From: Lepidodermella squamata
Lineage: Eukaryota > Animalia > Gastrotricha
DNA length: 64,000 nt
Assembly (NCBI GenBank): GCA_047495785.1
Contig: JBLDXI010000002.1
Span: 992,001 to 1,056,000 of the forward strand
Direction of reading: 5' to 3'
Part shown: positions 3,969 through 59,203 of the stretch, one piece after another
Layout of the letters: the number at the start of each line of letters is the position of its first letter
How positions within the stretch are numbered: the stretch's first letter is position 1
The notes under the pieces: model-generated
What the model saw: only the letters and a program-made list of their open reading frames with translations
Database searches by the model: none
Told to the model about the DNA's origin: nothing
Translations under genes and position numbers: made by a program

Positions 3969-6521
3969 CTAAGCCCCCGAAGCAATCAAGATCCTCTCAG
4001 CCACAGGCTGCTTCATCCGCCTCGCCATACTAAGAGCCGTCTTGCCAGCTTTATTAACCGCGTTCAGATCTGCCCCGGCCGCAATCAAAGCACCTAGCGC
4101 TTTCGTCGCTCGATTTGCGACAGCATTCAGCAATGGGGTGTTACCCTCGGCAACATTTCTAACTCCATTGATATCAGCACCTTTCGCTACAAGTCGATTT
4201 ATTACTTCATCACGGTCTTTACCTGCCGCCTCCCATAACGGCGTAGTACCGTCCTTAGACAACGCATCGACCTTGGCGCCTTGCTCTAAAAGCAAATCGA
4301 CCAGTTTTACATTACCCTCAAAGGCAGCTAGCGTCAACACGGTTTGCTTATTGTCGTCAATAGCGTCGATTTTCGCGCCCTTGTCGATGAGCATCTTCGC
4401 GATTTCAATGCTGTAGGGTGTATCCTGGGCAGCGGCCATGAGTGCAGTTTGCCCGTACTGCTTATCGCGAGAATCTACATCTATTCCGTTATCGAGAAGG
4501 ATTCTGAAACACGTCATCATCTCGTCGTCCATGCTGTAGATAGCTGTGGTTAACGGCAGCTGACCAACGGCTTTCACAACTGTTTCGAGAACTATTTTCT
4601 TGGGGTTGAGAAGTGTCGGCAGTAGGTTGCAGTGTTTCCAAGCAACAGCAAGGGTGATGGCGTCGTAGTCAGACGCGTCTTGAATCGTTGGATCTGCGCC
4701 CTTGCCTAACAAGAAATCAACAGCGGCTTTGTTGTTGCAAAGAACAGCGTGATGAAGGGCGGTTGCATGGAAGAGTTCAGACACGTCACAGGAGGCGATA
4801 CTGTCCGGATGTTTCCAGTTGATTGAGCAGCCTTTTTCCAGAAGTCGTTGCACTACCTCGAGAGCGCCGCTGCCTGCGTTTCTTATCAATTCCCGTTGGT
4901 CTTTTTCTGCCTGTAAAGAAATAAGAGCTTTGATTTGATTAAGGACTATATAACCAGATTTCCCAACTTTTCGAGGTTTAATGGCTTCAGAAACAAATTA
5001 ATCCCAAAACACAGAACAAAAATTGGTACCTATGTCAAAACGTGCGAAAAGCACGATATTAATTGAGTCACTGGAACTTACACACGGTTCTGGAAGTTTT
5101 TCACAAGGCGCGGCGATGCTCCAACTGTTGGTTTTATCCGCAGGCTGAGTTTCGCACGTAACTGAGCCTCCGCCGGTGTAGCCCTCGTTGCATTCAAAAC
5201 TTCTCGTGGCTCCAATTTCATTCGAGCCATGGTGAAAGTAGCCATTTTCGATGTGGGGATCGCGGCACGTTGTTGATGTTGCTATAATTTCGCGAATAAA
5301 ATAAATGAATTAGAAAGCTTGCGTTAACTCACCTTTCGCAACGCAAATACCAGCAAGAACCCAATCTTGAACGGCATCGATATCCTTGCATTCAGCGGAG
5401 TTGCCACCTTCGACTTCGAAGCCATCATGGCAAGAAAAGTGGCGGACTGAATTCAAGTCTTTCGAACCGGCAATAAAGTCACCGTTCTCAATAAATGGAT
5501 CGGAACACTCAGCCCGAATGGGTAACTCATTAGCTACCTTCTCTGCATGCAAAAACTCGTATTAATACGAAAATGCTTTTTCTTTAGGTCGAATTTACCT
5601 TCGCAGTCCGCTAAAGGGTTAATTTTGACCCATTTATCGACCTGACACGTGACTCCAATATGGCCATGGTAACTGATGTAGCCATCTGTACAGTTCCCAG
5701 ATCGAGAAGCCCCGTCGTAAGAGCCACCTTTATTGTAAACAGCATTTGGAAAATTCGGCTCTTCCTTGCATTCGGCTACGAAAATACAGCGTAAAATTGC
5801 GAAGTTCAAGCAACTGTTACTCACTTTTACAGAATCTTCTTTCCGTGAAGTCGATGGACCACGTGCCATCTGAATTGCAAGTTGACGTCATACCATGGCC
5901 GTAGGTGTTGTTGCCATTACGGCATTCAAGCATCATAATCTTGTTCGCGGTGATTGGGCCTTTCAAACGCTGAACCCATTTCCCGCGATTGCCCATGAAT
6001 TTGATGTAGTGCCATCGGTGCTCTTCTGGGTTAAAGTTCGGCTCTGGACATGGTACAAAGGATCTCATCGATACTTCCTAAATTAGAAAAATATACAAAT
6101 AAAATTTCAAGTATGATTCACAGAAGATTACCATGGTATTCACGTCCTCGAAATTTGCATCCCACCGGCCGGTTTCTAAGCACGTGAAATGGCGGATTAA
6201 TTGAGCAGGCTTGTCAGCATCGTAGGAATCTTTCCGCTTGATACTGACAGAGCATTTGGCATTGACGAGTAGAAGGCGCCCATCCGGGTGTCTCAGGTAG
6301 TTTTGGACGCCTGGCTTGGCTGTTTCTTCATCGAACTCTACGATCAAGTCGCTAGAGACAGGTGGAACACGGCATCTTACAACCTTGGTTTCGATAAAAT
6401 CTCATCAACATGAGGTCAATGTGCTGATAAAACATACCTTCAGGTGATATCGTGATTTATCAATCGGGCGCGCATTCAAAACAATGAAACAAGTGAACAA
6501 GTTAAGTATAAGGAACCGCAT
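3969..6521 (-). CDS. Sushi-ankyrin gene A: signal peptide + 5 CCP-like modules + C-terminal ankyrin repeats
   Basis: ATG 6521 MRFLILNLFTCFIVLNA. Exons 6521-6438, 6383-6132, 6077-~5825, ~5776-5600, ~5544-5333, ~5282-5082, and ankyrin exon 4910-3969. Phase-compatible GT-AG introns. CCP pattern C-P-NG...C..GY...C...W...C. Confidence 0.85.
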
Positions 6522-6861
6522 CCTAAAGAGAGATTTACTTAGGAAAGGCGAACACAAGAAGGGAGGTCTTAATTTTATTTTACAGTGTAAATTTTAAAAT
6601 TAAAAAGATTATCCACATGAAATAACTCTGAGACTAATTTTGGTCTGAAAGCACAGAAATCAATGATTGATGAACATGTGGCGAAAATTATGTAAATTGG
6701 AATTGAGAACAACGCTACACAAGGTGACACGTTCATCTTGGTGAAGGGTGCCATAAGTCCAACACAGTGAGTAATGATAACTTTGATAATAACGCTAAGT
6801 AATATAGCTTTAGAATAAGACTAAACGAGCCGCGCATTTGTTTCAACGATAGAACGCCATC

Positions 6862-9800
6862 TTAACATTCTTCGTTCAAATCGACACCATGATCGAGAAG
6901 CATTTTGAGAAATTGCCTGCGTCTAGCTTTGATCGCAACTCTAGCCGCCGTCTCTCCACGGCCATTTCTGACAGACAAAGCTGCCCCATTTCGCAGCAAA
7001 ATATCGCCAATTGCAATGCCATCGATTCGAGCAGCTAGCGTTAAAGGCGTATCTAAACCGAACTCAACAGGGTTGAGGTCTGGGATTGAATCGAAACGCA
7101 TATTCAATTTCCTAGACACTGTAGTTCCGTTCAAATAAATTTCCACCATCTGCGAATCATTTGCGAGAATTGCGACATATAAGCCACGTTGAACAGTTAT
7201 CGCCGAAAGCGGCTGGTTCAACATGAGCTTCACAGTTGGATGTTTGCGATACTTGGTCGCTAGGGCCAGAGCTGAGATTCCATTTTCATGCTTCGGAATG
7301 TATTCAATGACTTCTTTATCCATGGTTAGAAGCTTCATAATATCAGGATCAGCACCGGTATAGATTGCCAACTGAAGCGCATCCGTGTCATCTTGAGCCC
7401 GGACGTCGATTCTAGCGCCTTTGTCTAGGAGAAATTGAACAACTTGACTCGTCGAATTTTGGCACGAAATTGCTCTAATCAGGGCGGTTTGGTTGATTCC
7501 GTGTAGGAAACAGTCCTTCGCGTACATTGGGTTTTGCCAGTTTATATCAAGGCCGTGCTTTACGAACAAGTTTTCGGCCTCAGTCAAATTATGGGCTACA
7601 ATCGCTTCGAAAAAATCCATTTCCGCATCGCCTAGGAAAAGAGAAAAGCTAATTTCATCAAAGCTAAATTTGTATTAAAAATTAACGAATTGGAAAAACG
7701 TTATTGAAAAAATTAACATTTAATAATATATTTGAAATTAAAATTCAAAATTATTAAAATTAATTTAATTTTTTTTGAAAAATCCTAGAAACAGGCGAAT
7801 ACCATAGTCTTACAGAAATTAAGCTTGGAAATAATTCATACTGATACTGATACTGTTTATTTTGCATTTTGTTTTACAACATTTAGCAATTTGGAATTAA
7901 CAATATGTTAGGTTATGGCGCCTCACCACAGAAATTGTGAATTTATCCAGGTCGGCAGTATATTTAATATATTTCAAGGGATTATACCCACTTGCGCATT
8001 ACCACTTGCGCATTCCCCTTTGCGCACGAAATTTCCCACTTGCGCATTCCCCTTTGCGCACGAGTAAATAATAATAATAATAAATAATAATGTAACAATA
8101 AGCGACTTATGTTCATCGCGCGCACGCGTCCATGCTAAGTCACCATGTTAACACGTGTACTGTTCGTATATGTGACACCTGCTTAATCCGGTTGGCGCGA
8201 ATTAAATTAACAGACTTAGCAGCACTGAAGTGTCATTACAGTTACGAATTATTGCTTACCTACATCCACCTTAATTCGCTCTAAGTCATGGATGAGAATT
8301 GCGAGCCTCCTCAAAAAAGAGGTAGAGGGCGACCTAAAGGTAGTAAGAACAAGACTACTGAAGCACCCGCGCCCCCAGTGTTACCGAGCGCTGTTGCTCA
8401 TCGAACTCGAAGAGCCAAGCCGACGGCGCCGCCGCCGCCGCCGCCGCTGCCGCCTGCTAATAGAACGTCACCCGCTTCATCGACGCCGCTTCAGGCCAGA
8501 ACTCTGTTCGCAATGCAACTCGACCCGTATCGCTCTAGCCCCCTTGGTGTCTCGCCGTTCCCCACGCTGGCTCAGCTGGCACCCTCTACACTTCCTCTGC
8601 CGCTTCCTGTGACACCGCTGCTAACCGAAGCTAATCCGCCTCAAGAGCCGGCTGCGGTAAATCCTGTGGTAAATCCGTTTGACCTGGATGTGCTGTCACC
8701 CAACAGCCGCGTTACACACCTGTTGCAGCTGCTGGAGACTGAGAAGAAGAAAAGCCTCGAGCTGCAAAAGCGACTGGAAAACCAGGCGACCGCGTCACAG
8801 TTCGCGGCTGAATGCAGCCTCGTCGTAGAAGAGGTGAAAGAGTGGGAGGAATGGGAGACGACAAAGCTGAAACCGGTACGATGTGCCGGTGGATACGAGT
8901 ATCGGCTGGAAATGCGCGATGATCGCGAGTTATGGCGCTGCCGTTATGACAAGCGGTGTAACGGCCGGGCAATTTTCGACGAAGAAACCGGAAAGTACAC
9001 CTTGAAAAGTACGAATAATCGACTTTAATTAAAGCTTGTAAAAATAGTTGTTCTGTTTGATAGCCCTCGAAGGATGGCACAATAAAATCAATCGCCTCGC
9101 CCATAATCTGCACTTGTCGTTCTGGGCTTTCATCGAGCTGATTCTTGGCGAGGAAACAGATGCTCGTGGCAAGCTGCTACAACAAATTTCGGGTGAAGAT
9201 CTTGCTTGCCCAAAGAAGAAGTATGAACATGTCAACAAAAATTTGGCAAAATTAGCGACCAAGTTGCTGGAAAAGAAGCTCACTGTTATTGAATACTTAG
9301 ATGGCGCTGCCATTAACCTAGCTTCATTCAACACTATTTACTAAATAAACTCATAATAATAGTGTGTGCGCTTTATTATTAATAATTTGGCTGTGCGCAA
9401 AGGGGAATGCGCAACTGGGACTACTTACCCTATCTGCTCGTGCGCAAAGGGGAATGCGCAAGTGGTAATGCGCAAGTGGGAATACACCATTTCAAGAATG
9501 AGGGATACGAATTATTATCACCCCTCTGAAATTATTTATGCCTTGGTCCTAAAATCAGTCGGCCACTGTGTTGACCATTGTTCGGATTAAAATCAGACCG
9601 GCGGATTTTATGAGCGAGCCGCCGGTCTGATTTGTCTTAACTCGAACGAAGGTCAACTCAGTAGCCGTCAGATGGCAGAGCAAAAATTAAGACAACCCAA
9701 AAAGAGACAGGACAAAAAAATAGGTTAAGGAAAAAATGGCGAAAAAGGCGAAAATACAACAAATTCCTGGCTTAGGTAAAGGTAAAATGCCACGTTGAAA

Positions 9801-12798
9801 ATAGCAAAAAATTAACTAAAATGGCTTGGCTAATAGAATATAGAGCTCAATATTGAATAAAGACAAAAATTCGTTCTAATTTGACTTATACAATTCACCC
9901 CGTTTTCTACGCAGAGATTCAGAATAATTCCAGAATTCAAGAGATTAGAACAGGTTTGAGGAAAAGATACCGTTCTCATTCATTTTAGATTAATTTGTTC
10001 AACGTTGTTATCAGTGATCAAAATTTTTGGATTTGCCAATTGCCAATTTTCGATCAGCTGGTGCTTTAATTTGAAATCAATAGCAATGCCATGAATATCG
10101 AATTGCAGGCCGGAAAGAGCAATAGGGTTAGATCCCTCTATAAATTTTAGGAGCAGTTTGATGGCAACTGAAATTTATCGCCTAAAAACTGTATTTAAAC
10201 AAAAAACGGAATTGTATTTACAGTAGATAATATAGAGCTAGGTCTGACAATCTACATCACCTGAAACCTCAATAATTACTGAAAATACCAGAACTTGAGC
10301 CGTTCTTGCCACCTTCGGTTAAAAAGAATCTATTCAAACCTCCAAATTTCATCTTAAAACATGCTAGTAGCTTTCGAATCAAAATTCGGAAAAATGAAGC
10401 CCGACTAATGTTTACGAAGTCCACGTGTCTTAGTCCAAAGGAAAAAAAAATCAGTCTCTTTTCCGTCGTGACGCGGATTACTACTAGGACAAGTCGCAGA
10501 TGGGTGATAATAAGTATATTGCCTTATTTGCAATTTTACAAAATTACTAAAATTACAACTAAGGCAATATATTATAATTAATGACGGAAGATGGTAGCCG
10601 GTTCCAAGCTGGACGCACTCGCCTCACAAATGAAAACTGAGAACTGGCATGACTGTACACTACAAAAAATAAGTCTGTTTTCACTGAGCACGAAAGTCCG
10701 TTATTACAAAATGTTGGTAAAAAACTCGGTGATTATCTGACGCCTGGTATTCACTTTTTCGGAAACTTGGTGAAAACTAAGCACTCGGTAATCACCTAAG
10801 TAAACTATTCGTAATAACCGAGTTCTTGGTAATCACCTCAGCAAAGTTATGGTAATAACCGATTTACCGAGTTCTAGGTAAATATCTCTGTTAATAATTT
10901 GTATTAACCGATTATTTACCGATTTTTTAGTTTTGACGTGGATGACATGGAGGAAAGCTAAATTGTGGAAAAAACGCTCAACTTAAAAGCCCGTAGAGCT
11001 GTGTTATGGAGCGCTGAGCCCTACGCTATCAACATGACAAATTAATTATAAAAGTCTCCCGAGAATAGGTTGGGTCAATTGTTTCGATCAATTGTCTACT
11101 CTGTAGTTTCCAGAGACTAATCGGCTTAGATTTCAAGATCGGCTTTTTATATGCATAGATTTCGATGGATTGAAATCTATAAGCATAGTAGAAGTCGGTA
11201 ATTATTACTAGGATAATAATAATTAGGAATAAAATATAAAAATGGAGTAAGTGAAAACACATTTTGACGTGCTCACTCGTGTACCTGATTATAGCTATGA
11301 ATCTTAGAGGAAAACCAATTGCACCAGGAGATTCCCCATGAAAAACTGCTTTAGAAAACATTTTCAAAATAAAAAAATAAAAAAGTAAAAATAAAAATAG
11401 ACTAAATATTCAAAATGAACAATAATGGGAACCAAGTACCAGCTCTGCCACGGGTGACCAGGTGTGATATGGGCCTCTCACCATCTGCCTTTACTCCTTA
11501 CGCGTGCGTCAAAAAAACGAAGAAAATCGATTTGAAACTTATATACCCCTATTAACCATCACTTAATATGAGCGGCAACGTGGTCTAGTGGTAGCGCGTC
11601 CACATCTTCGGCAAGGCGACCCGAGCTAGCCATCGTAACAGAATGATGCGGTAAGCGCGGATTAGTGGAAATATTAAAGAAGTTAGAGAAATTTAAGTCC
11701 ACAGCACGCTGGTACATTTTATGACATAACGCAAGATCGTGTTGGTAGCGTCTTAATTCGAGTGAACACAACCCAAGCTTTTTTAGTCGTTCTTCATAGG
11801 AGGAGCCTTCGATCGATGAGTAGTAGGTACTACGATATAGCAAACGTTTTGTGAAGCGGATTTGAATCGATTCGACCTTTTCAATATCTGTTATTAGGTA
11901 AGGCGAGTAAACAGACGGGCAAAAGTCAAGACGAGATAAAGTATACGTTTTATAGGCTTTGAGATGTAAGGATTTAGAGGCGAACGATTTACAAATAACA
12001 CCGTTAATTCTGTGGCATTTAGTTGCCAATGCGTTACAGTGCTCAGAGAAGGTGAGATTTTTATCAATAATTATTCCGAGGTCTTTCACCGAGTCCACAA
12101 CATCAAGCTCGACATCTTTAATTTTGAATTTGAACATAAATTTGTTTTGCCCGAGTATAAGCACGACGCATTTTTTCGAATTCACAGACAGGCCGTTAGC
12201 GTCAAACCAGTTGATGATTTCATCCAAGTCTTTCTGCAGTTCGATGCAATCGCTTAAAGAACGGATCGCCCGGTATAGCTTCGTATCGTCGGCGAAGAAT
12301 TTCGCAATCGATCTCTCGACCAACACATTTACTTCTGTCGTGAAAATCAAGAACAGCAGCGGCCCTAGAACAGAGCCCTGAGGTACTCCAGAAGTGACCG
12401 CCGACCATGATGACACACTGTTATTCACTGCTACCCTGAAAAATCGGTCGCTTAAGAAAGCCTTTATCCAGGCGTGCAAGTTTCATGTACTGAGAATTAA
12501 TTACTTTACCTGGTCCGTCACAGCTCCTCTCAAGGGATGCATTCCATAAGCCTGTTTCCCTCGAGCAATAAGCTTGGGCGACCGTGTAATTCGAGGGTGG
12601 GCAAATTACTCGTAGGTTAGCTCTGCCCAAAGCCAGCCAGTCATCAGGAACATTATACGTCATCCACACTAGATTTCTCGTCGTAAATTGCTCATAAACG
12701 CCGAATTTTAACTTCGGAATCGAGCAACCTTTAGCAGTCAATGAGGTAGGATAGAGGATAAAGAATATCAAACAAATCACAAAAATATGCCGAGTCAT
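6862..12798 (-). CDS. Sushi-ankyrin gene B: signal peptide + 1 CCP + ankyrin repeats, with a 4.9 kb TE-filled intron
   Basis: Exon 12798-12510 (MTRHIFVICLIFFILYPTSLTA, CSIP...C...C...W...CDGP) ends phase 1 at G|gtaaag. Acceptor cctag|GC at 7631 is phase 1 and in frame with ankyrin ORF 7620-6862. Confidence 0.72.
7979..9488 (+). mobile_element. MULE-like (FLYWCH-type) DNA transposon, internally deleted
   Basis: ~50-nt TIRs (GG..TA..CCCACTTGCGCATTACCACTTGCGCATTCCCCTTTGCGCACGA). 8-bp TSD ATTTCAAG at 7971-7978 and 9489-9496. Confidence 0.88.
8288..9344 (+). CDS. Transposon-encoded protein: AT-hook, Pro-rich region, FLYWCH-like finger, transposase C-terminal motif; no DDE core seen
   Basis: KRGRGRPKGS; YEY...WRC...RCNGRA; EGWHNKIN...SFWAFIELI. 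A candidate 55-nt intron at 9009-9063 joins the two ORFs in frame. Confidence 0.6.
11630..12480 (-). mobile_element. CR1-type LINE reverse transcriptase fragment (truncated at both ends)
   Basis: WIKAFLSDR, SGVPQGSVLGPLLFLIF, FFADDTKLY, VKDLGI, SYEERLKKLGLCSLELRR. Confidence 0.93.
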
Positions 12799-13091
12799 GA
12801 GTCTTGAATTATCTATAATTTTCATAGAAATCGAGAAATAGAAACCTCAAAAAATCTAAAATTTTTACTATAATATGGATTGAAATTATTAAATAATAAA
12901 TTCAGCTGTGAAAAATAGCTGATTAAGAATAATTTGAACTTGACCTGAGTTGCAGTGGCTGTAGTGATTGTACCTATTATTTATGCAGCTATTGGAATGT
13001 TTACCTTGGGAGGAGAACCTTCACAGATGTTTCAACCTGTTGCCATTTGCAGAAACATGATTAACGAATGTAATAGCAAACAGATGACTCA

Positions 13092-13622: not shown

Positions 13623-14012
13623 TTTGTAATAAAACATGAAATTTCGTGCACTTCGTCGTCAGCTAACAGGGAGTTCGCATGAAAACGTTCTATTTTTCAG
13701 TTAGTTTAGCTTTGTTTGGCTATTCTGAGCTCAATCAGACTATCAATACGTTAACGCTACGTCTAATGCGCGAAAAACTCATAGTTGCTCAAGGCGTCTT
13801 ATTCATTTCTCATTTCAACTCGATGATATTTATAATTCTCCATGTAATTGAGTGAAATCTCCAAATCTGTTCAAAAGGGCTTCCTGATCCCTTAATCACA
13901 TATCATTAAATAAATGCAGTTCGAACACAACTTTTTTATTTAGGAATTGAAAACGAGAGAAAGAACATCTGCGGTGGTTAGTAATCCAGAGAGACAGAGA
14001 GCAGGCCTAAGT

Positions 14013-17000
14013 TTATCGGCTGAGTTTGGGTGACGTATTCGCAAGATTTTGACAAATCGGCATTGTCCGGCAACCTTCAGTTGATGCACCGTTGAGAGCA
14101 AGCAGTTGAACAATCCGAGGAAATCTCTTCTTCGCTGCAATCGTTAACGCCGTGTCACCGGCCTTGTTCACCGCGTTAACATCAGCGCCATTGGCCAACA
14201 GTACGGCTAACACCTTTACCGAACGATGGCTGACCGCATTCATCAACGCTGTATTGCCATCGACGACATTGGCAATCCCATTGACTTGGGCGCCTCTTTT
14301 GATCAGAGTTTTGATGATTTCATCGTTATCTTTAGCCGCAGCCTCCCACAACGCCGTAGTTCCGTTCATAGTTTTCGCATCGATCTCCGCCTTGTAGTCC
14401 AACAGGATCTCAACAGTTTCCAAATAGCCTGTGAAAGCCGCGAGTACCAGCGCGGTTTGATTCATTTTATCTCGATTGTTAACCTGGGCACCCTTCTCGA
14501 GAAGAAATCTAACGACTTCAGGGTAGTCAACGGCGAGTATCAGCGGGGTTTGGCCGTAATCAGCGTCTTTCGCTTCGATATCGCCACCGTACTGTATTAT
14601 ATTTTCTAGGCAAGATGTCATAGCTGGGCCGTAATTCTCAATCACAGTTTTTAGGGGCCACACTCCCAAAGATTTCATCAAGCTTTCTCGATTATCTTGG
14701 ATTTTTTCGTGATCCAAAACAGTAGAGATAATGCCGCAATTTCCATATGAAAGCCCGAGGGAAATCGCGTCGAAACCTAATGCTTCTTTGATTGCGGGGT
14801 CGGCATTTTGATCAAGTATGAAAGAGATAGCAGTTTCCTTCCCGCAAATGACGGCATGATGCAGTGCAGTGGCATTCAGTGCCTCGCTTGCGTTTTCGCA
14901 GTAAGTTGTGGAAGATGGGTCTCTCCAGTTGATGTCACACTGGGAATCTCCCAACAGCTTAAGAGCGGATTCCACCTCAACGCTTACAGCTGCTTTGATC
15001 AGCTTTCGTTGATCCTCAACAGACTGTTAAACTTTCAATATTGCAAGCTATAAAAATGGTGGTAAAAAACTCACGCAGGATGAGGGTTCGCAAGTTGGCG
15101 GAGGCGACCATTGTGAATCATCTCCGCAAGTTAAAGTGTCAGAGCCTTTCAGAGAGTATCCTTCGAAGCATTTGACAGCCGCAGTCAAAGCCTTTGAGTC
15201 TGAACCAGTCGTGACCTCGCTGTTCTCAATAACCGGGAGCTGCCCACATCGTGACAAGCCAGAATCTGCGGTGAAAAGGTACAAATACGATGTTAAGTTG
15301 GGACATCATAAAGGGGTGTGCATTTTCCTACCATCAATTTTAGGACTAAACCAGAATTTTTTGTATATTTCACCATTAACTTTGGGGTTTTCATCATCAA
15401 AGAACGGAAGCGGAAACAGCCATTAATTTAGATTCTTGCACCAACAAAATGAATTTTCTCTCCAGAGATTGGAGAATGGATTAGCAAAAGTACCTAAATT
15501 GAAGGCAATTTTCGTTTCGTTGGCGAAAGCCCCAATTTGATGGTAAAGACCCCCAAAATGTATGGTAGAAAGCATTTCCCCTTTGAAAAACAGCACCTAG
15601 CATTCTTCAATGCTATTTGGGCAAACGAACCTTGTTGGCATGTTCCAACTTGACTCCATTCAGGCTTGCCAGTTTCCAGCAATACTTCACAAACAGCTTC
15701 ACCTTCCCCTATGTAGCCGTCATCGCAAGTGAATTTTCGCTTCGAATCGATTGAGTTGGATCCTGCCTCAAAACGTCCGTTTTCAATTCTAGGCTCGCCG
15801 CCACAAGATTCTAGGAGTAACGCAACAGATAATTAACTTCAAGTTGTGGATAGTTGAAAACCTTACCTTTAGGTACACATTTGCCCCGGTAGACCCAATC
15901 AAGCGTGCCATCTGATTTCGTTATGCATTCCGCGAAGTTCTCTCCTTCGACGATAAATCCTTCATTGCAGCTGAAAAGTCTCTTAGCACTTTCTGCGTTC
16001 GGGCCGTCATAGAAAGCACCATTCACCATCTCCGGGTTCAAGCATAACGAGAGTTTAGTACTTCCAGTGCCATCTGCAAGCATTACGATATCATAAAAAG
16101 AAATCTCACAAATATCAAGGTTACTTACCTGATTCGCACGAAGCGAGTGGATGCTGCCTCACCCACTTTCCATCACGGCAGACCACATCCAAAGTTTCGC
16201 CATGGACGATATTGTAGCCAGTGACGCATTTCCCCATACTGATGTCTCCTTGAGCAATTCCAGCAATGGAATAAACAGCATTGGCAAGCTTCGGTTCATC
16301 TTTGCACGATGCTTGGGAAAGGAAACAAAAATTGTTGTAAAATCAACAACAAAATCGCATTACGTTTGCAAAACTGTGGGCCAAGCAAATTAACACTCCA
16401 GACGCCATCCGCACCGCAAACAGAAGTCACGTTATGGCCGTAGTTATCAACACCGTTCAGACATTCAAGCCTGGCCTTGTCGTTTTTCGTTGGTGTCTTC
16501 GCTTTCCATTTCAGCCAGAAGTTGTTGGCCCAGTATTTGATGATGTGGTTCGGATGTGTGTGCCGATTTACTTTTAACCACGGACAGAATGTGATAACAC
16601 CCCTCACTCGCTGCGAATAATTGAGCGAATAAACAATAAAAGCGACAAATTTAATTGTTAACTCACTGGATCGCATGTATAATTGAACGGGTGGTCCCAA
16701 CTGCCGGTTTCCATGCATTTCAAGTAAGGAATAGCTTCCTCTTCAGGTGATCCTGATTTCAAATCGGAGTCACTTGAACAAGTGACTTGAACGGAGCAAT
16801 TTGCCTTGACATGAGTGATTTGACCATCATTGTTACGGCTGAAACCGTCAGTACTGCATGACGTGTCGAAAGGCTCGATGATCAATGACTCGATTACAGG
16901 AACTTGGCACTGTACGGCCTGAATAATTGAGAGTATAAAATGTATAAAAATAAATATATTTATGTATATAATAAAGATTAAATTTGGAATAATTTTCATG

Positions 17001-17288: not shown

Positions 17289-18511
17289 CCTATTGTTGTG
17301 TGAAAACAGCAGAAATAGAAGGCTATTTCAAATAAAGGATAAAATTGCGATATTCGGCTTTTCTTTTCATTTTTGTAGGTAACGAATTAGTAGCCATAAA
17401 AAAGATTGGAAAAAGAGCTGAAACCTATCATCAATTAACTGGCTTGCAAAGTAGTGAATTAACTTCATGAAAGGTAAACACGACTGAGTAGAAGCAGGAC
17501 GCGATAAATTTTGAAACAGATTTCATACATTAACAAGTTAGACTTTGGCAGAAGGTGTCGAGTGTCATCTGGAGGGTCAATGGGACACTAAGTAAACATA
17601 CTGAAACGGAATGCTTACATAATTAAGAACTAGCCTTTCAAAAAATCTATTTCGATGGGCATTCATGTTGAAAAATAAAAATAATTCGAAATAGGCAAAA
17701 TTTGGTAAATGAACGGTTCTAATGGCTAATGAGCAGAAGTGGAACAGCCCAGATAAAAATCCGTCTGCCCAAATGCATGTTTTGGCCAAATTTCTTGTTG
17801 AAGGGGTTCAACAATTATAATGTGGAATTTTGGTGCTATTTTTCACAGGTTCTCGCGGTAAATTTTCATCTGGGTAGCTAGCTTTTTTCCAACCCAACCT
17901 TGCCAATGACCAGGCCTGTAATTTTAGGGAAAGTCCAGCCCAACCGGCCGGTAATAACCTGTTTCTAACGTTTGGTCGAAAAATTTCTGAAATGGTTATA
18001 ATATGCAGAATTGTAATATGTATGAAGAGGCAGTTTGTTTTACTGCTACAAACTTGGGCCTTGAGCCTAGCTCAGTGCACTAATCTCATTGGTGATCTTT
18101 CAAAAGCCCATCAGAGCTAACCCGTAACTCGCTGTTTTTAGCCAATGATCGTTGGAAAAGGTAGTACCACACACGCCTCATCGACAATGTAAGAAGCCAT
18201 ATGAATCGGTCATTTTCCATTCAAACCAAACCTGGCCTAAACTAGACGTATGCCGGTAATAACCTCATGTTCTACCGGCCGGTTTGCAAAACCTGTTTCA
18301 TCGTTGCTATTGAGATGGAAGCGTCACTATGAATAGAGCGTTAACTTCCTAAATTTCCAAGAATCAGTCCCTGAGGATATTCTGAATTCAACGATTTTCC
18401 GAAAACTCGTTTTAGAATAAAATACTGGCCTGAATGTCATCAGTTTTATTTGTGAAACAATGAAGGAAACAATCAATCGTAATGTAAACGTTAAAAAACA
18501 ACAACTTGTCA

Positions 18512-21500
18512 TTAAAATTCTGGGAGGACAAGCTCTGGCAGTTCCGTTGTAGTCGTCGTCGTAGTCTGCTTCTTACAAATGTCCATAGTCTTGCAGACTT
18601 CAAGAGAAGCCCCGTGCTCTGCCAATATGTCCACGATGCGAAACGAACCCATCTTTGCAGCCACAAGCATGGCAGTTTCGCCAGCTTTGTTCGTCGCCTC
18701 GAGGTCAGCTTTCGGAATCAACTTTTCAATAACCTTACGAGCTCTCTTTTCAACAGCGTTGATCAGCACGGTATTGCCGGTGAGAACATTGGCAACCCCA
18801 TTGACTTGCGCGCCGCTTTCGAGCAGAAACTCTACAACGTCGTCGTTGTTTTGGCCCGCAGCCTCCCAAAGCGCTGTCGTACCATTCGCAGTTCGCGCCT
18901 CAATGTCAGCGCCCTTTTCAACCAATTGCGTAACAACTTCATAATTGCCACGAAAAGCCGCGATGATCAGAGCTGTTTGGTTGAATTTGTCGACAGTATG
19001 AACCGACACGCCACGGGCGAGAAGTTTCTCCGCCACTGCCGGACCAGTTTCAACGTTGCTTGCTGCAAACATCAAAGGCGTTTGGCCGTAATTTTCTTCA
19101 GTCGATTCGACATCAGCTCCGTAGTCCAGTAACGAGTCCAGGCAGTCATAGTCGATTCTACCTTCGTCATCGGGTCTTTCCAAGACCGTGAAGATCGGCA
19201 ATGTTCCAAGAGCTCTCAAGTTGCTCCACCGCTTTTCAAAGTTGAAGTTCAAAATTGTTTTAGCGATGTCGCAGCGTCTCCAATACAGCGCGAGAGTGAC
19301 GACATCAAACTCGCTAGCATCCTTGATAAACATGTCGCCTCCTTTCGAGTTGACGTATTTGACGGCACCTTCGCGTTCGCAGTAAACAGCGTGATGGTAG
19401 GCGGTTGCATTGGCAGCCTCGCGGCCTTCGCAATAGGCAACTATTTCAGGATCTTGCCAGTTGATGTTACAATGTGCTGCCAGCAGTCTTTCAGCCTCAT
19501 CGAAATTAATTTCGTCCTGTCCTGCAATAGCCTTGATGAGTTTGCGTTGATCATCATCCGACTTCAAAAAAACAAAATGTTAAGTTGATTTTTGAATTTT
19601 AAATTCCAGAATAAGCTATAGACGCAGGAAAATACGCTGTACTTACACATCTTTCCTCGCATTTCGCGTCGAATTTCCATTTCAAATCTCGGCCACAGGT
19701 CGCCACGTTAGAACCTTTCAGCATGAAGCCAGCTTTGCACTCGAAGGTGGCGATCGACCCAGGAAAAAACGGTCCAATGTTTACATCTCCGGATACCAAA
19801 GAGCCGTTTTCGAGAACGGGTGGGGCCTCACAGGGTGGCAAATCTATAAGGCAAGATAAATCGACTAGAACATTGATCAGACAATGTTGCTTACCACCCA
19901 ATGCACAGTTGCCCGAAAACGTCCAATCAGCCATGTTATTGTAATCAAGGTCGCAGGTCGCGTAGCCTTGGCCATCTTGGAGTTGGTAGCCTGGGTTGCA
20001 TTTGAAGTCGCGTTTTGAGCCGATGCTGTTGCTTCCGTCTGAAAACTGTCCATTGTCTACTTCAGGATCAGCACAGTTTGTTGGAGGAACTGAAATAATA
20101 ACACGAATTAGCGGATGCTCTTCGATTACCAAAGAGAAATGACTCACTTGTTGATGCGCAACTGCCTAGGATATCCCAGTCGTAGGAGCCATCGCCAGAA
20201 TCCTTGCAAATTGCTGTGTTTTCTAACTCCAACTGGAATCCTTCGTTGCAAGTGAAGTTCAAGCTTGTAGAAACTTCATTGGTTCCTTCGCTAAAGACGC
20301 CATTCGGAATGAATGGTTCCGGGCAATACGCAGTTTGAAAACCTTGAATTGGATCTAAATATTCAATGTGGATAAAAACAGGAATAAAGTTTAAGAAAGC
20401 TATCTAGGAATCAAATCGGTCGATAGAAGCCGCCGATCACACGAAAAATATAAATAAAAAAGGATGACTTTTGGCATGGGTTTAGGACGAATTATGATTT
20501 TTCTGTCAACTGTATATGCCTGTTATCAAACGCTAAGGAGAAGAGTGTATAGATGCCTTTTCATTATGTATTTTTAGCGAATTTTTCGGCCCGTTCCTGA
20601 ATTTTCGCCCGCTCACTAAGACGTAGCCATAGAGAAAAAATGACCCCATTTTCATTTTTTCAAATTCTTGTCATTCCATATTCATGTGGTTCCTCGGTCT
20701 CATATTTTGACCATGAACAGTCAGAAGCCATTTCAGCAAGTTCACGCAATCTCATGAGCCAATTCCTCACCGTTAGCGAGCCATCGTTGCTCAGAGCTTT
20801 AAAAGGAAAAAATTGATAATCGCTCGAGGGCGCCCTAAATTTGCTCATAAAAGCCACGATAAAATCTTCACTTCTGAACCTGAACTGCACACTCGCTCAA
20901 TTTGTATCCTTTTGGGTTCAGGTTTGGTAGATTGATAAGTGCCAACACGTTGAGAATACTCTAATTTATCAATCTACCAAGCCTGAACCCAAAAGGATAC
21001 AAATTGAGCGAGTATGTCTCTTATGGTCTGCTTATGGTCAAAATATGAGCCTGGGTTATAGAATGGTTATGGGATGACAAGAACGTGAAATAAGTGGACA
21101 TTTTTTCTACATATTTAGGTAACCCTACCCACGGTGGGTAGGGTTACCTATACATGTAGAAAAAATGTAACCCACCTTATCCTAATTCTTGAGTAAATTA
21201 GTTCAACTTACTTGGTTCTGGTTCGCACGCAGCCAACAGCATGGTCTTGTGCCATATTTTGTCGCGACATTTCATTGCAATTTCGCCATGCACCTGCATA
21301 TATCGGCTCTTGCACCTGCCGTAACGAACAGCGCCCTCGTAGTTCGGGCCTTTCGGGAAAACCGCGTTCTCAAATTCAGGCTCGCCATCGCATCGGGCTA
21401 TAGGTAGCAAATACAGTAACAAGTTGCAGAAAAATAAGATGTCATGAGATTTACCTTTGCAAAAGCTTTCGTCAGCGAAATTGACCGACCAACTGAAGTC

Positions 21501-22175
21501 GCTTTGGCATACTGCTATCGTATTGTGGCCTATAAGATCATCGCCGTTGCCTTTGCACAATAGTCTCATCAAGGTGCCGACTCGCGGGACGGCGATAATC
21601 GGCAGCCATATATCACTTCCTGGCTTTGCGTATGAGACATTGTGGTTTGGATATTTGCTGGGTTGTAGCTTCGGCCGGCTACAAAATGATGATGAGAATC
21701 TTTCTGCCGCCTGGATCGGAACGAATAATATGAAAACTCGATAGAATAGCCATATCTTATTCTGAACCCTTACCACGCATTTGTAGTCGAAAGCGTCGTT
21801 CCATCTGCCGTTGGGCATGCAGGCACGAGTGGGCGTTATTACCATAGGATTTATGAATTCGTATTCAGCATCGCATTTCACTTTGACCGCACAATTCGCT
21901 GTGACGATTATGGGTCTATTGTCGGATTTTCTTGTCAGATAGTTTCGAGGTGACAGCTCGCAGGTTGTTGTGTCGGGTTCGACTATCAAGTTCACGACTT
22001 CGGGCACGCGGCATCTCGGCACCTGAATGAGTGAATGAATTATAAAAAATCACATCGAAAATTCGACAATGATGAAAAGCAAAACTGAGAAATTTACCTG
22101 ATAATGCTTTCGGCTTTTCGCTAGAACACTCGGAGCAGTCAAGCCGACGAGTATTATGAATGAGAAAAGTATCAT
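18512..22175 (-). CDS. Sushi-ankyrin gene D: signal peptide + 6 CCP-like modules + ankyrin repeats + Thr-rich tail
   Basis: ATG 22175 MILFSFIILVGLTAPSVLA. CCP exons from 22022 to ~19648. Ankyrin exon 19561-18512. Confidence 0.87.
20640..21170. repeat. Nested inverted repeats / foldback MITE-like sequence in gene D intron
   Basis: ~48-nt arms at 20891-20938 and 20966-21013. Looser outer arms ~20662-20720 and ~21027-21085. Near-perfect palindrome 21099-21169 centred on ctacccacggtgggtag. Confidence 0.8.
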
Positions 22176-26700: not shown

Positions 26701-27211
26701 GAAAGGCTCTTATAATTTCGAATACTGATGGTGTATTAAAGAAAATTTATTCAAATTTTCAGCATTTTGAAATTTTAGTTTTGTTAATTCAAAGCAAGAA
26801 ATTAGCCAAAGAATAATCTTACGTCGCAGTAACAATCAAATTTATCACTCCAATGGCCACTGTCCAAGCATGATCGATACGTCGAGCGTGTCGAATTGCC
26901 GCGAAATTCAAGCGTCTCATCATCCCTGCATTTGACTTTAACACCGCAACCAGCAGCCACATAGGTTAAACGATCGTCTTTGTCACGCAGGAAAGCACTG
27001 AGTTTTCGGGAGCAAGTGTCGGTATCGGGCTCGATTATCACACCGGGAGTTACTGGGACCACGCATCGTCTGATCTGTGTTACAAAACCAATTTTAACCC
27101 AGATTGTTGGTTAATTTATCCATTTATCCATACCTTTTTCGGCGGTTTTGAATTGATTGAATCGACTAATGCGATTGCACATAAAATTGAAATCAAAATA
27201 AATAATCGCAT
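23754..27211 (-). CDS. Sushi-ankyrin gene E: signal peptide + 7 CCP-like modules + ankyrin repeats
   Basis: ATG 27211 MRLFILISILCAIALVDS. CCP exons from ~27074 to ~24966. Ankyrin exon 24773-23754. Confidence 0.87.
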
Positions 27212-27894: not shown

Positions 27895-28022
27895 ATTATA
27901 TAATTATAATATATTATAATATAATATAATATAATATAATATAATATAATATAATATAATATAATATAATATATATAATATAATATAATATAATATAATA
28001 TAATATATATAATATAATATAA
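27895..28022. repeat. (ATAAT)n microsatellite
   Basis: Direct reading, about 20 pentamer units with a few interruptions. Confidence 0.95.
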
Positions 28023-38900: not shown

Positions 38901-39745
38901 ATTAATCAATTACTCATCCTGTCTTCTCCAGCCGTAGTTTGAGGAATTGAAGGTTGTTGGGTTGAAGAAATTTCCCAAACTTTTTCGGTCGAGACTTCGG
39001 GCTTTTCAGTAGTAGAAGACTGTTCCGTGGTCGATTCATAAGAAATCGCCTCGGCTGTAACGGTAAAACCAGCCGTTGAAGTCCAAGCCGGAGTTTCCGA
39101 CCAACCTTGACAGACCATAGGCGAGAAAATTTGCGACCAATTTCCGTCAGGTTGGCAGGTAGCAACGAGCAAATCAGCAGGGATTGAAGCTCCTTGTTTG
39201 CAGACAACTCTGATTTGAACACCGGTTCGAACCTGGTCCAAAGAATCTCCAATCGGTTGCCATTGATCCGTATCGGGGGGTTTGAGTTCTATCGAAGCGC
39301 TGTCCAGGTGAGGAAGATGACACGCCAATTCTTCAGTTATCAAATTTTCTGCGATCTGAATAAATTAGTCATGTTATTCAAATGTCTAATAAAATATTTT
39401 TAATTAATTCAATTAATTCAATTAAATCCCAGAATGTTTCAAAATTTAAAATTCGATTAGCTAGTTCATCCTAATAATTTCCAATATTTTTAGAAAAATT
39501 TTGAACCTCCATCCTTGGGGATGAATTCTCCTTGGGACCTCGTGGTTTTAAATTTTAAATTACCTCCAATTCTGTCCCATCTCCGCTTCCTCGATTCTGC
39601 TCCAGGATTTTCACATTTATTAGCTGCAAAACGGAAAGAAGATAGGTTCCAAGTCCTTTCTGCATGTTTTTACCTGATCTTCAGCTTCAACGATAACGAA
39701 TAGCAACAAGGAAAGTGGTAAAAATGTAATTAGAAAATTTGTCAT
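32945..39745 (-). CDS. Sushi-ankyrin gene F: SP-CCP-S/T-rich-CCP-CCP-ANK-Kunitz-ANK-CCPx4-ANK mosaic
   Basis: ATG 39745 MTNFLITFLPLSLLLFVIVEA. Junctions are phase-compatible, one needing a GC donor at 34384. Ankyrin blocks at ~38394-38018, 35800-~34830 and 33628-32945. Ankyrin-to-CCP fusion is visible inside a single ORF (34353-35765). Confidence 0.78.
36509..37628. mobile_element. Non-autonomous Tc1/mariner-type element in gene F intron
   Basis: 25-bp perfect TIR CAGTGTGTCCGTCAAATAATATGAG with TA on both flanks. Confidence 0.9.
37700..37963 (-). other. Kunitz/BPTI domain exons of gene F (not in ORF track)
   Basis: Two exons give KCLGFRYPDKANIFDCGQSIPSYYYNSDTKECLPFTYGGCANVINRFNSKAECLAIC, with six Cys and FxYGGC / NRF motifs. 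Confidence 0.9.
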
Positions 39746-54153: not shown

Positions 54154-55024
54154 ATGAAAATTCCTCTACGCTTGATTTCTGTTCATTTTTACACATTTTT
54201 GCACCTCTTCGCAACTGTCAATAATCAGCAATCACCACCTCGCCAACTCGTAACCGCCAACCCGCCAACCACGAACAGGCTGGCAAGTGGGGCGATTTAT
54301 GCGATTCATTCTCAAGCAACCGATGTGCCTCCCTGTCCAAGTTGTGCTCTTAATCTGTGGAGCGGATACAGCCTGTTTCAAACTTCCGACTCGGGTCGCG
54401 CAAGTGTGACCCAAAATCTAGGCCAAGCTGGGTCGTGCATGCGCCAATTTAACGCTACGCCTTTCGTTTATTGCGGATCAAATGAGGCGTGTGTAGCCAA
54501 TTCGAGGTCGACAACTACCCATTGGCTGTCTAGCGATTCACGGGCTCAGTATATAAATCTATATGGGTTTGACGAGGGTCGAGAGGTGCCGCTAACGTCG
54601 AGCGGCGATATTATGACTCAGATTTCTCGGTGTAGTGTCTGCTTGAGCTCAGGGCCTGTTTTCGCGATCCACTCCGGATCCTCAACCCTCCCGACCTGTC
54701 CGGGAAGTAATTTCCAATCTCTATGGACTGGTTACAGCTTTTTAATGGTAATCTAAATATTTTCACATTCGAATTTTTAAGGTAGCTGATTTTTTTCAGC
54801 ATTCAGCTGGTGGCCAGCAGTTGGACTCGCCTGGCAGTTGCTTGATTCATTTTCGGCACCATCCTTTCATCGAATGTACGGCATCAGGGCAATGCTCCTA
54901 TCCGTCAGATATGGCGTCTTATTGGTTGGTTGCAAGCGATGCCTATTACGGCAATGGCGTGAAACGCCGCGACGAAGCTGCCTCTGGAATAAGCCGATGC
55001 AGGGTGTGCACTCTACGCAATTGA
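54154..55024 (+). CDS. Secreted stand-alone collagen IV NC1-domain protein, copy 2
   Basis: ATG 54154 with hydrophobic N-terminus. Same NC1 motifs. Intron 54748-54799. No Gly-X-Y. Confidence 0.9.
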
Positions 55025-57451: not shown

Positions 57452-57802
57452 GTTTCATGACATCTCATGAATATATTCATATTATTGAAACTATCCCCAT
57501 TTCCTTGGAGCTATTTTTGGAGATCGTGAAAAAGGCGTCATTTTGGTCCGTTTTGCTTGGAATAAACAGCCTCATTTCGCACGTGCGAAAAATTTCAACT
57601 AGCATCGCCTCAATTCCACCGTGCGGATCTTTTGACTGTCACTGTAGTATTGAGCAAACCGCAAGACATTATTCTTGCCAATTTTGCCACATTTTTATTT
57701 ATGCGAAAGCTGAAAATTACGAAGGAAAACCAATCGCAAATGGACAACAAAAGGCGGTTAAATCAACATTAAAACCGGCAAAAAATTACGAAAATTCGCG
57801 AC

Positions 57803-59203
57803 TCAGATTTCTTCAAGAGGAAATTCCTGTTTACGAAGGCAGATTTCGAGCTGGCATCCAGTAACATCGGCATCGTATGTCACTAGATGTTCAACAAGAT
57901 CAGCATAGCCATTCTTCGCGGCAATTTGAATCGCCGTCTCGCCATCACTATTCGTCGCATTAACCCTGGCATTATCCGCCTCGAGCAGTTTCAACATGCC
58001 GAATTCCCGCCCAGCCAGAGCAGCGCGATGAAAGGCAGTCTCGCCCCAGCTATTAACAGCACTGACCGTGGTATTGTCTTTCTCTGTTATGTATATGATA
58101 ACTAGATCGATGGCGTTATCAACTGCGAACATCAAGGCCGTATTGCCATCCTTGTCGGCTGCATGAACATCGGCACCGGCTTCGATTAATTTTATCGCGA
58201 TTTCTGAGTTATTAGACGCGATGGCGGCAATTAAGGGCGTCCAGCCTGAGGTTTCATCTTTCTCGTCAAGATCGGCGCCTTCTTTTATATATTTATTAAC
58301 AACAATATCCAGGTCGCCTTTCTTTGCCGTTTCAAACAAGGTCTATAGGAATAAAAATTGTTTGTATGATTTTCAAAAAAATTCAAATTAGGAAAACTTA
58401 ATGTTTTCTGAATTTTTCAATTTTTCAAAAAAAATAAAAAATAATAGAGAAATTAGAAATTTTCCAGCGATTGATACCGAATTAAACCGAAAAAAAACCC
58501 GAGAAATGGTTCGGTAATTATCGGTATTTTTTCCTCGTAGGACCAACTTCTTCCAAATTTTTATTTTATATTCCCTTATCCCTTTAAAAGGCAGAACGTC
58601 ATATCAGCAAATAGTCAAAATAGCAAACGCGACGAAACAGAAACTTTTCAACTGTAGCCATAACAGCAGAAACACAATGAATCTTTGACATTCTGAAATG
58701 TTGCTGTTTTGTCGCATTCACTGTTGCTATTTTGTCGCCGTACCCATTATCCAATTCTTTACTTAATTTTAGTCATTCTCATGGCTTAGGAGTTCATTCA
58801 GAATGACTGGCTCACCTGTGATGTACAGCTGAGGGTGAGATGCGGATGCCAAGTTCCGTCTTTCTGGCAGGTGCTCATCGGAGGGGGATTGCCGCCATGT
58901 GGGCAGGAAACTTGCACAACGTAGCCTGCTGTGAACGATCTTCGAGGAGTTGAATGGAAAGGCTCGGTCTCAGTTGACGATCGCCACTTCAATGTAATTT
59001 GGCCTGGTTTATAGTGAGCAGGCAGCTTGCAAGGAATCGTTGATCTAGGTCCCAATTCACCCTGTTCAAGACCCTGTTAAAACAGAACAAAAGGGGATGA
59101 ACAACGCTGTCGGATTTTCGGCTGCTTTTCTTACATCGGTTGCGTCCTCAGATGATGCACAGATTCCTATTAATGCGATAATTATTCCTATTTTCGCGAT
59201 CAT
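57803..59203 (-). CDS. Sushi-ankyrin gene G: signal peptide + 1 CCP + ~5 ankyrin repeats
   Basis: ATG 59203 MIAKIGIIIALIGICASS. CCP exon ~59073-58816 ends SQ|gtgagc. Ankyrin exon 58342-57803 in phase 0. Confidence 0.82.

Follow-up and report, generated by a model that had tools for sequence, protein, structure and literature searches.

Ankyrin repeats are usually regarded as a module that works inside cells. To our knowledge, the textbook exceptions are rare, and none of them follows the classical secretory pathway together with partner domains rich in disulfides. The latrotoxins of widow spiders are animal ankyrin-repeat proteins that act outside the producing cell; their ~20 repeats follow a large helical N-terminal domain, and they are not known to have CCP modules or a classical signal peptide. 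Notch combines disulfide-rich extracellular modules with ankyrin repeats; a membrane span separates these parts and places the ankyrin repeats in the cytoplasm. Two other kinds of solenoid repeat binder work outside cells: DARPins, which are engineered, and lamprey VLRs, which consist of LRRs and are assembled somatically.

We analyzed a cluster of genes (A-G) that pair CCP (Sushi) modules with ankyrin repeats, located in a window of 64,000 nucleotides (the whole stretch of DNA under study) from Lepidodermella squamata. In contrast to latrotoxins, the proteins have CCP N-terminal parts and ankyrin blocks of ~2-9 repeats, so they do not fit the latrotoxin family; the only similarity seen was that of generic ankyrin repeats. 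Notch and the genes here both pair disulfide-rich modules with ankyrin repeats, but here there is no span, and an ankyrin block of gene F has CCP modules on either side. VLRs and the ankyrin domains here both have cysteine-containing caps; what sets the latter apart from DARPins and VLRs is that the paralogs show no hypervariability on the binding face. In factor H, C4BP, DAF/CD55, MCP/CD46, and beta2-glycoprotein I, as predicted for the proteins here, a signal peptide precedes a row of CCP modules, each encoded by one exon and having four cysteines and a conserved tryptophan, and judging from predicted models, complement-regulator CCP proteins appear to be the best structural matches of the divergent N-terminal modules described below. 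However, these five are without ankyrin repeats, and no sequence orthology to them was detected. In MASP, C1r, and C1s, CCP pairs likewise serve as spacers beside a functional head; these proteins have a protease domain, whereas the seven genes here do not, and gene F has a Kunitz-type inhibitor domain.

In searches that were either swamped by generic ankyrin matches or blank, no relative or described family with the same architecture turned up. A word-indexed protein search with the ankyrin and Sushi exon of gene F returned generic ankyrin proteins at ~30-40% identity, none with Sushi, and the same kind of search with only the CCP part of that exon gave no matches; a length window and the word index narrow the scope of both. 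An exhaustive HMMER search with the gene D ankyrin exon was dominated by giant ankyrin proteins with many repeats. A feature search of the ESM Atlas gave only generic ankyrin clusters, and a full-text literature search for secreted or extracellular ankyrin proteins with Sushi/CCP found nothing relevant.

Seven genes on the minus strand

The cluster comprises seven genes, all on the minus strand within positions 3969-59203, and each assembles into one open frame (Table 1). Gene models were made of exons spliced at GT..AG sites; each reads in frame to one terminal stop, and no frame is interrupted (given as across 3-12 exons; the gene B model lists two). Splice-site scoring ranked at the top both gene D introns that were later seen to be removed in cDNA. 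AATAAA lies 49-103 nt downstream of every terminal ankyrin exon, the shortest distance being that past the stop of gene A. A dynamin-like gene is found in the neighborhood of the cluster; a search with this gene matched only unnamed Logan proteins, the best of them at 62% identity (run ERR10802333). Secreted collagen-IV NC1-only genes also lie nearby.

Table 1. Positions of the genes and of selected features within the window.
Feature	Positions	Strand	Description
Gene A	3969..6521	minus	7 exons, 705 aa; predicted signal peptide, 5 CCP, ankyrin domain of ~310 aa
Gene B	12825-12510 + 7631-6862	minus	362 aa; 1 CCP-like module and ankyrin exon
Gene B first exon	12510..12825	minus	predicted signal peptide and CCP-like module, pattern C..C..C..W..C
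Gene B ankyrin exon	6862..7631	minus	Ank_2 E 5.6e-18; C-terminus ...NEEC
Gene C	14013..16999	minus	7 exons, 783 aa; predicted signal peptide, 6 CCP, ankyrin domain
Gene D	18512..22175	minus	8 exons, 805 aa; predicted signal peptide, 6 CCP, ankyrin domain, Thr-rich tail
Gene D intron, last CCP exon to ankyrin exon	19562..19646	minus	85 nt, GT..AG, removed in cDNA
Gene D 3' UTR	18431..18511	minus	AATAAA 61 nt past stop; poly(A) site ~18431, ~81 nt past stop
Gene E	23754..27211	minus	9 exons, 855 aa; predicted signal peptide, 7 CCP, ankyrin domain, Thr-rich tail
Gene F	32945..39745	minus	12 exons, 1301 aa; 7 CCP, 3 ankyrin blocks, mucin-like stretch, Kunitz domain
Gene F fusion exon	34628..35800	minus	ankyrin block then Sushi module, one uninterrupted frame
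Gene F Kunitz/BPTI	37700..37963 (exons 37963-37897, 37845-37700)	minus	between two ankyrin blocks
Gene G	57803..59203	minus	3 exons, 288 aa; predicted signal peptide, 1 CCP-like module, ankyrin of ~5 repeats

The predicted proteins were examined by hydropathy. Every model opens with a methionine and a core that is hydrophobic, with Kyte-Doolittle values of 1.5-2.7; small residues precede a plausible cleavage site in most of the models. After this signal-like segment, no 19-residue window exceeded a Kyte-Doolittle value of 1.63 in any of the seven models, and the peaks sit in ankyrin helices. The C-termini are polar, with neither KDEL/HDEL nor a GPI signal. The sequence-only reading had described seven minus-strand genes, each encoding a signal peptide, 1-7 CCP modules, and ankyrin repeats without a span between them, and this description was borne out by the in-frame models, the Pfam matches, and hydropathy, which shows a signal-like hydrophobic segment at each N-terminus.

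CCP modules, ankyrin domains, and the gene F mosaic

The N-terminal parts contain recognizable CCP modules and more divergent ones. Fourteen modules reached the curated cut-off for Sushi (PF00084, 20.7 bits), with scores of 20.8-39.5 bits: exons 5 and 6 of gene A, exon 6 of gene C, exons 5-7 of gene D, exons 5, 7, and 8 of gene E, and five modules in gene F. The others were below the cut-off, such as the CCP-like module of gene G (16.2 bits), or unmatched, such as that of gene B, which Pfam did not recognize. In an alignment of 15 modules, C37, C51, W60, and C66 were invariant and C12 nearly so. A third module type is conserved, has the same Cys/Trp pattern, and was linked to canonical modules by hhalign (96.6% probability, E 6.8e-10). 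Module types 1 and 2, which are N-terminal, had no Pfam match and no hhalign link to canonical CCPs. Their AF2 models had pLDDT values of 84.7 and 85.5. Among the Foldseek PDB matches listed, 50/50 for type 2 were CCP proteins (two of them titled differently), as were most for type 1; E values were weak (0.03-0.09) with probabilities of up to 1.0, and the rmsd for type 2 was 2.7 A over 69 columns.

Ankyrin repeats were found by Pfam in every minus-strand exon named beforehand, with Ank_2 E values of 1e-12 to 9e-62 (7.5e-37 in gene A). All nine ankyrin blocks (9/9) match PF00023 / PF12796, with Ank_2 scores of 48-206 bits, and five canonical repeats of gene D could be set in register. Each of the eight domains with an N-cap has two cysteines there, and 7/9 domains have a C-x3-4-C motif in the C-cap; gene G, for example, ends in GCQLEIC. 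The cap cysteines and the Thr-rich tails of some ankyrin domains fit with life in the secretory pathway. Some surface residues are kept across paralogs, including a W-E pair in repeat 3. The mean pairwise identity among paralogs was 0.37 at binding-face positions and 0.49 in the framework, a difference that was not significant (permutation p = 0.22), and DARPin-style diversification of the ankyrin face was dropped as a candidate on this result.

Gene F is modelled as a mosaic of these modules. It encodes a predicted signal peptide, one CCP, a Ser/Thr-rich stretch, two CCP, a short ankyrin block, the Kunitz domain, a long ankyrin block, four CCP, and a further ankyrin block, so that an ankyrin block has CCP modules before and after it. 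Its model appears to include one 1.9 kb intron and one GC-AG intron. Neither a signal-peptide candidate nor a poly(A) signal was found between its parts. With every junction in phase and the frame open, the mosaic proposed from sequence holds. The second Kunitz exon matched Kunitz_BPTI (PF00014) above the cut-off (44.8 bits, E 1.4e-11). The domain has six cysteines, the first two of which are in the preceding exon, and its Cys1-Cys2 loop is unusually long. The introns in the Kunitz region are 54 and 51 nt and in phase.

Joining of the CCP and ankyrin parts

The CCP modules and the ankyrin repeats are parts of a single polypeptide, as supported by cDNA (gene D) and by fusions within one exon (gene F and two paralogs). 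We compared 6000 letters of the window with a public cDNA run (X1) and a run from a close relative (X2). The X1 contigs were restricted to the exons of genes C and D; for gene C, they lay on exons and were absent from the 365-nt intron and the flanks. In gene D, one contig linked position 19561 to position 19647, the shorter arm of the joint being 34 letters long, and joined ...KCEERC in frame to SDDDQRKLIK.... Joints in cDNA were seen in gene D only and for its last two introns only, the second having 26 letters on its shorter side, under the bar of 31. This result confirmed for gene D the CCP-to-ankyrin splicing put forward by the sequence-only reading, and it argues against ankyrin exons that are expressed apart from CCP exons.

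Gene D ends with its ankyrin exon. An X1 contig has a loose end at position 18431, made up of the oligo-dT cDNA primer and then a run of T, 14 nt beyond AATAAA. Polyadenylation of the transcript this close to the stop indicates that no exon with a membrane span follows the ankyrin exon.

The fusion exon of gene F carries both modules in the same open reading frame (Ank_2 E 9.2e-62; Sushi E 5.5e-9, 36.7 bits). A single-exon fusion of ankyrin and Sushi is also present in two paralogs elsewhere in the genome (L002:4175-5062 and L003:6258-7304). In genes A, C, D, and E, the CCP-to-ankyrin junction has an identical position, is in phase 0, and has the motif C-x2-5-C before the junction and S/A-x-D/E-x-Q-R-x-L/M-I after it. 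At the CCP-to-ankyrin junction, gene C has an intron of 51 nt, D of 85 nt, A of 171 nt, E of 192 nt, G of 473 nt, and B of 4.9 kb. The exons of gene B are phase-compatible (a phase-1 donor at 12510 and a phase-1 acceptor at 7631), and a gene B paralog (L002:5963-7364) has the same two exons separated by only ~135 nt.

Topology, role, and alternative explanations

We think it probable that these are seven real tandem paralogous genes encoding secretory-pathway proteins, for which a soluble extracellular binder or adaptor is the likeliest role. The predicted signal peptide, once cleaved, would bring the chain into the ER, and entry by this route would place the ankyrin domain, usually a protein-binding solenoid, in the lumen or outside the cell. 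The string of CCP modules, presumably disulfide-bonded, would form a stalk, the N- and C-cap cysteines probably staple the ankyrin domain, and the Thr-rich tails are probably O-glycosylated. The ankyrin domain would then be the ligand-binding part, with the CCP string as a spacer or a second binding surface. Such a secreted binding scaffold could act in immune recognition, in adhesion or mucus, or in a toxin-like manner; no link of these genes to immunity or venom was found. That the cluster is part of a large lineage-specific repertoire of disulfide-capped extracellular ankyrin binders on CCP stalks, a DARPin-like humoral recognition or adaptor system coupled in one case here to a protease inhibitor domain, seems unlikely to us. 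If true, it would give animals a third repeat-based scaffold for extracellular recognition, besides those of the immunoglobulin and LRR systems.

Two alternatives would break the link between secretion and the ankyrin domain. A membrane-span exon might have been missed, leaving the CCP modules outside the cell and the ankyrin repeats in the cytoplasm as in Notch. The long CCP-to-ankyrin introns of genes G and B leave space for such an exon, and that of G contains a hydrophobic open stretch; however, the stretch lacks phase-compatible splice sites, and no phase-compatible hydrophobic exon exists in this 473-nt intron. The introns of A, C, and E contain no hydrophobic frame. The cDNA join leaves no room for an extra exon and refutes a missed span for gene D; for gene F, it is refuted by the presence of CCP and ankyrin in one exon, as in the two paralogs, and by the CCP modules on both sides of an ankyrin block. 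A missed span, which the sequence-only reading had named among the findings that would overturn it, is therefore excluded for D and F, and for the cluster as a whole we regard it as highly improbable. The models might instead be mis-joined, with the ankyrin exons forming cytosolic transcripts of their own (trans-spliced, for example, at the acceptor of the ankyrin exon) beside CCP-only genes. The cDNA joint is indeed from one gene only, but that joint, the conserved motif and phase of the junction, and the single-exon fusions all argue against mis-joining. In addition, in A, C, D, and E the ankyrin exon has no in-frame ATG near its 5' end, and CCP and ankyrin exons are not separated by a poly(A) signal. 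Mis-joining thus has very little to recommend it.

Two further alternatives accept the gene models. With the same secretory topology, the proteins might be structural or material components (such as mucus, adhesive, cuticle, or egg coat) or proteins that reside in secretory granules, and not specific binders. This is possible, if doubtful: the Ser/Thr-rich, mucin-like stretches of F, D, and E, the absence of hypervariability on the ankyrin face, the conserved surface residues such as the W-E pair, and the nearby NC1-only genes are all in its favor, whereas ankyrin solenoids are binding modules and not known matrix formers, and the proteins are modest in size and without low-complexity bulk. 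Alternatively, the cluster could be the largely non-functional, decaying product of a lineage-specific burst of duplication, which we consider quite improbable. Between this genome and that of the close relative, gene C has 8 synonymous and 19 non-synonymous variants in a partial list, with a pN/pS of ~0.7 that indicates weak constraint on the protein. Gene A is without a C-terminal Cys motif and has lost 3/6 cysteines from its first module; gene B has no C-cap Cys motif, and its large intron contains a LINE reverse-transcriptase fragment. Against decay, every gene has an open frame, both C and D give rise to transcripts, and the D transcript is spliced and polyadenylated. Moreover, the cysteine codons of gene C were kept, with synonymous changes only, and the lengths of exonic indels are divisible by three.

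If the proposed topology is right, evolution would have adapted an ankyrin scaffold to the oxidising extracellular milieu, as engineers did with DARPins. The family is a source of natural ankyrin caps, putatively disulfide-stabilised, for study, and it raises the question of why a small invertebrate has so many such proteins. The contribution of the window is direct cDNA evidence of the CCP-to-ankyrin join.

The close relative keeps the reading frames of the genes compared. Within exons, it differs in length by a deletion of 3 nt and by an insertion with a net length of 3 nt, the exonic indel in gene C being 3 nt, and there was a 3-nt deletion in the 3' UTR. Indels in introns were mostly not multiples of 3. 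Within the cluster, some copies may be decaying: gene A no longer has certain cysteines of the cap and of a module, and the intron of gene B is laden with transposon sequence.

Gene models and module identity

The ankyrin repeats of the cluster lie in nine minus-strand open frames (Pfam; Ank_2 E 1e-12 to 9e-62), with short Cys-rich open frames upstream of each ankyrin block. We assembled seven models (genes A-G) from GT..AG pairs ranked by consensus, frame and length; once spliced, each gives a continuous open frame whose only stop is at its end. The module counts of these spliced models (see table) match the one to seven CCP-like modules per gene of the sequence-only reading. Every model opens with Met, followed by a hydrophobic segment resembling a signal peptide. 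Beyond that segment, no 19-residue window in the seven models exceeds a Kyte-Doolittle value of 1.63, bearing out the earlier claim that there is no hydrophobic membrane span; the highest later peaks are ankyrin helices.

Features of the Sushi-ankyrin cluster, its paralogs (L002, L003: loci elsewhere in the genome) and neighboring genes
Feature	Position	Strand	Details
Gene A	3969-6521	-	705 aa; 5 modules
Gene B	6862-12825	-	362 aa; 1 module
ORF in gene B intron	8288-9028	+	FLYWCH zinc-finger match, weak
LINE-type reverse-transcriptase fragment in gene B intron	11559-12479	-	RVT_1 E 4.9e-13
Gene C	14013-16999	-	783 aa; 6 modules
Gene D	18512-22175	-	805 aa; 6 modules
Gene E	23754-27211	-	855 aa; 7 modules
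Gene F	32945-39745	-	1301 aa; 7 modules; 3 ankyrin blocks
Kunitz/BPTI domain of gene F	37700-37963	-	E 1.4e-11; two small exons, between two ankyrin blocks
Large ABCA-type transporter gene	40449-48873	-	several long exons; between F and G
Ankyrin-repeat ORF	50473-51489	-	no signal peptide or CCP modules; CCHC-like motif near C-terminus
Tandem collagen-IV NC1 (C4) gene	52535-53137	+	Pfam C4 E 7.8e-33
Tandem collagen-IV NC1 (C4) gene	54130-54756	+	Pfam C4 E 5.5e-35
Gene G	57803-59203	-	288 aa; 1 module
Dynamin-like gene	60035-61885	-	sole close database relative 62% identity, 3.2-kb Logan contig, run ERR10802333
Paralog	L002:4175-5062		CCP and ankyrin in one ORF; Thr linker
Paralog	L003:6258-7304		CCP and ankyrin in one ORF

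Fourteen modules reached the Pfam Sushi cut-off, and in an alignment of 15 canonical modules the Trp and three of the four Cys are invariant, with the first Cys nearly invariant. Three further module types are common to the N-termini of A, C, D, and E. Type 3 matched the canonical CCP in a profile-profile comparison (96.6%, E 6.8e-10), and on that match is assigned as a CCP module. Types 1 and 2 were recognized by neither Pfam nor hhalign. Their AlphaFold2 models had a pLDDT of about 85, and nearly all of the best PDB matches were CCP proteins (DAF, beta2-glycoprotein I, MASP, CD46), with probabilities up to 1.0 and weak E-values (0.03-0.09). Because these fold matches are weak and the Pfam and hhalign results negative, we term types 1 and 2 CCP-like rather than proven CCP.

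Gene F is modeled from sequence with 12 exons, open across 1301 codons, in agreement with a separate sequence-only note on this gene. Its short ankyrin exon at 38393 runs to a stop at 38001, with no AATAAA within the next 260 nt; for all terminal ankyrin exons of the cluster, AATAAA lies 49-103 nt past the stop. A GTGAGA donor 16 nt ahead of the stop leads in phase, via two short introns, to a Kunitz domain in which the loop from the first Cys to the second is unusually long. In the model this domain connects in phase over 1.9 kb to the long ankyrin exon, which itself lacks both a start and a signal peptide. The 61-nt intron at 34324-34384 (minus strand) can be spliced in frame only with a GC donor (CAG/GCACTG), as a GC-AG intron; if it is retained, the frame meets a stop 30 nt further on, and the CCP and ankyrin exons beyond it are cut off from any signal peptide.

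Evidence that the CCP and ankyrin parts are one polypeptide

Three independent lines (RNA, junction conservation, and single-exon fusions) show that the CCP and ankyrin parts are one polypeptide. Over the 6000 nt compared, contigs from a public cDNA run (X1, 2015) fall exclusively on C and D exons; introns and intergenic DNA have none. In one contig 19561 is spliced to 19647, with 34 letters on its shorter side (the tool's bar was 31), so that gene D loses an 85-nt intron whose minus-strand ends are GT..AG. The join is in frame (...KCEERC/SDDDQRKLIK...) and takes the last CCP directly into the ankyrin domain, confirming for this gene the CCP-to-ankyrin splicing that had been proposed for checking against RNA. 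A second joint, 19843 to 19895 (51 nt), connects CCP5 to CCP6 with 26 letters on one side, below the bar. At 18431 an X1 contig shows the oligo-dT cDNA primer sequence and then a T run, placing the poly(A) site 14 nt beyond AATAAA and about 81 nt past the stop. The ankyrin exon is thus the last exon, with no membrane-span exon downstream.

The CCP-to-ankyrin junction is conserved among A, C, D, and E, with identical phase 0 and the same flanking motif on both sides, including an extra Cys immediately before the splice site. In gene F, an ankyrin block and the Sushi module after it (36.7 bits) are encoded without interruption by one exon (35800-34628), and in two paralogs elsewhere in the genome a single ORF holds both ankyrin repeats and a CCP module. 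Gene B has a transposon-filled intron of 4.9 kb, with donor and acceptor both phase 1; joining across it is supported by the gene B copy in L002, where only about 135 nt separate the signal-peptide/CCP exon from the ankyrin exon. Also in L002, adjoining the paralogous Sushi-ankyrin genes, is a 415-aa Cys-rich ORF (456-1700, minus strand) with 18 Cys, repeated CCG/CCN motifs and a signal-like start.

Gene D at least has a genuine architecture of signal peptide, CCP modules and ankyrin repeats, and the other genes very probably have it too. What the window adds is threefold: cDNA proves the join, the poly(A) site speaks against a membrane span after the ankyrin exon, and CCP and ankyrin parts are fused within single exons.

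Secretory features, constraint and possible function

The ankyrin domains have features that suggest adaptation to the secretory pathway. The N-terminal cap (INW...C...AV-C) has two Cys in all eight ankyrin domains that possess it, and seven of the nine ankyrin blocks terminate in C-x3-4-C. Three more Cys are common to A, C, D, and E and, with the extra Cys ending the preceding CCP exon, give an even total; the C-terminal tails of D and E are Thr-rich. Judged from these residues, the domains would form disulfides and the tails would be glycosylated.

The genes look intact yet fast-evolving or weakly constrained when compared with DNA of a close relative (run X2; 90-99% identical, covering all of the 6000 nt compared). 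Exonic indels were a 3-nt deletion in a C exon and a net 3-nt insertion in the D ankyrin exon; the 3' UTR of D has a 3-nt deletion, and intronic indels were of 1, 2, 5, and also 3 nt. Among the 40 of 147 variants listed, gene C had 8 synonymous and 19 non-synonymous changes (pN/pS about 0.7), and both of its Cys-codon changes were synonymous.

In A, C, D, and E, the putative binding face of the ankyrin domains, with positions defined by designed ankyrin proteins, showed no significant excess of variability over the framework (mean identity 0.37 vs 0.49, p = 0.22), and some ankyrin surface residues are conserved among these genes. A face that is not hypervariable, together with conserved surface residues, favors a ligand common to this subfamily over a repertoire that diversifies within it. 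The reading with the best support is that of soluble proteins, extracellular or luminal, whose putative ankyrin binding head sits on a CCP stalk. Candidate roles in recognition, protease regulation (given the Kunitz domain in F), and secreted materials cannot be told apart.

Comparisons and genomic setting

The way in which known domains are combined in the cluster is unusual and apparently undescribed. Complement regulators and MASP-type proteins have similar CCP strings but lack ankyrin repeats; latrotoxins are ankyrin proteins that act extracellularly, as proposed here, but are built differently; and in Notch-type receptors a membrane span, absent from A-G, separates the two kinds of module. 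Full-text literature searches found no account of a secreted Sushi-ankyrin architecture. Protein searches were blank or dominated by generic ankyrin matches, and hence uninformative on occurrence in other organisms.

Sushi abundance makes the genomic setting extreme. Scanning the assembly (121 Mb in 151 contigs) in six frames with the Pfam Sushi profile yielded 1734 first-look candidates, with 150 of 150 scored passing the cut-off, and many lie in dense arrays (contigs C15, C19, C33, C13, C3, C24, and C55). The subfamily with the N-terminal cap is small, comprising A, C, D, E, F, and two distant copies.

The window DNA is eukaryotic, with G+C of ~42% and very short introns (about 50-60 nt), and also contains transposon fragments. 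The ankyrin-repeat ORF between F and G is an ordinary cytosolic-type gene, a contrast to A-G within the same window. Both NC1 genes have a signal-like N-terminus followed directly by the C4 domain, with no collagen triple-helix part visible in the same ORF, and may encode stand-alone secreted NC1 proteins. A repetitive stretch at 2571-3105 has long open frames on both strands, with PPRRRLH-type repeats.
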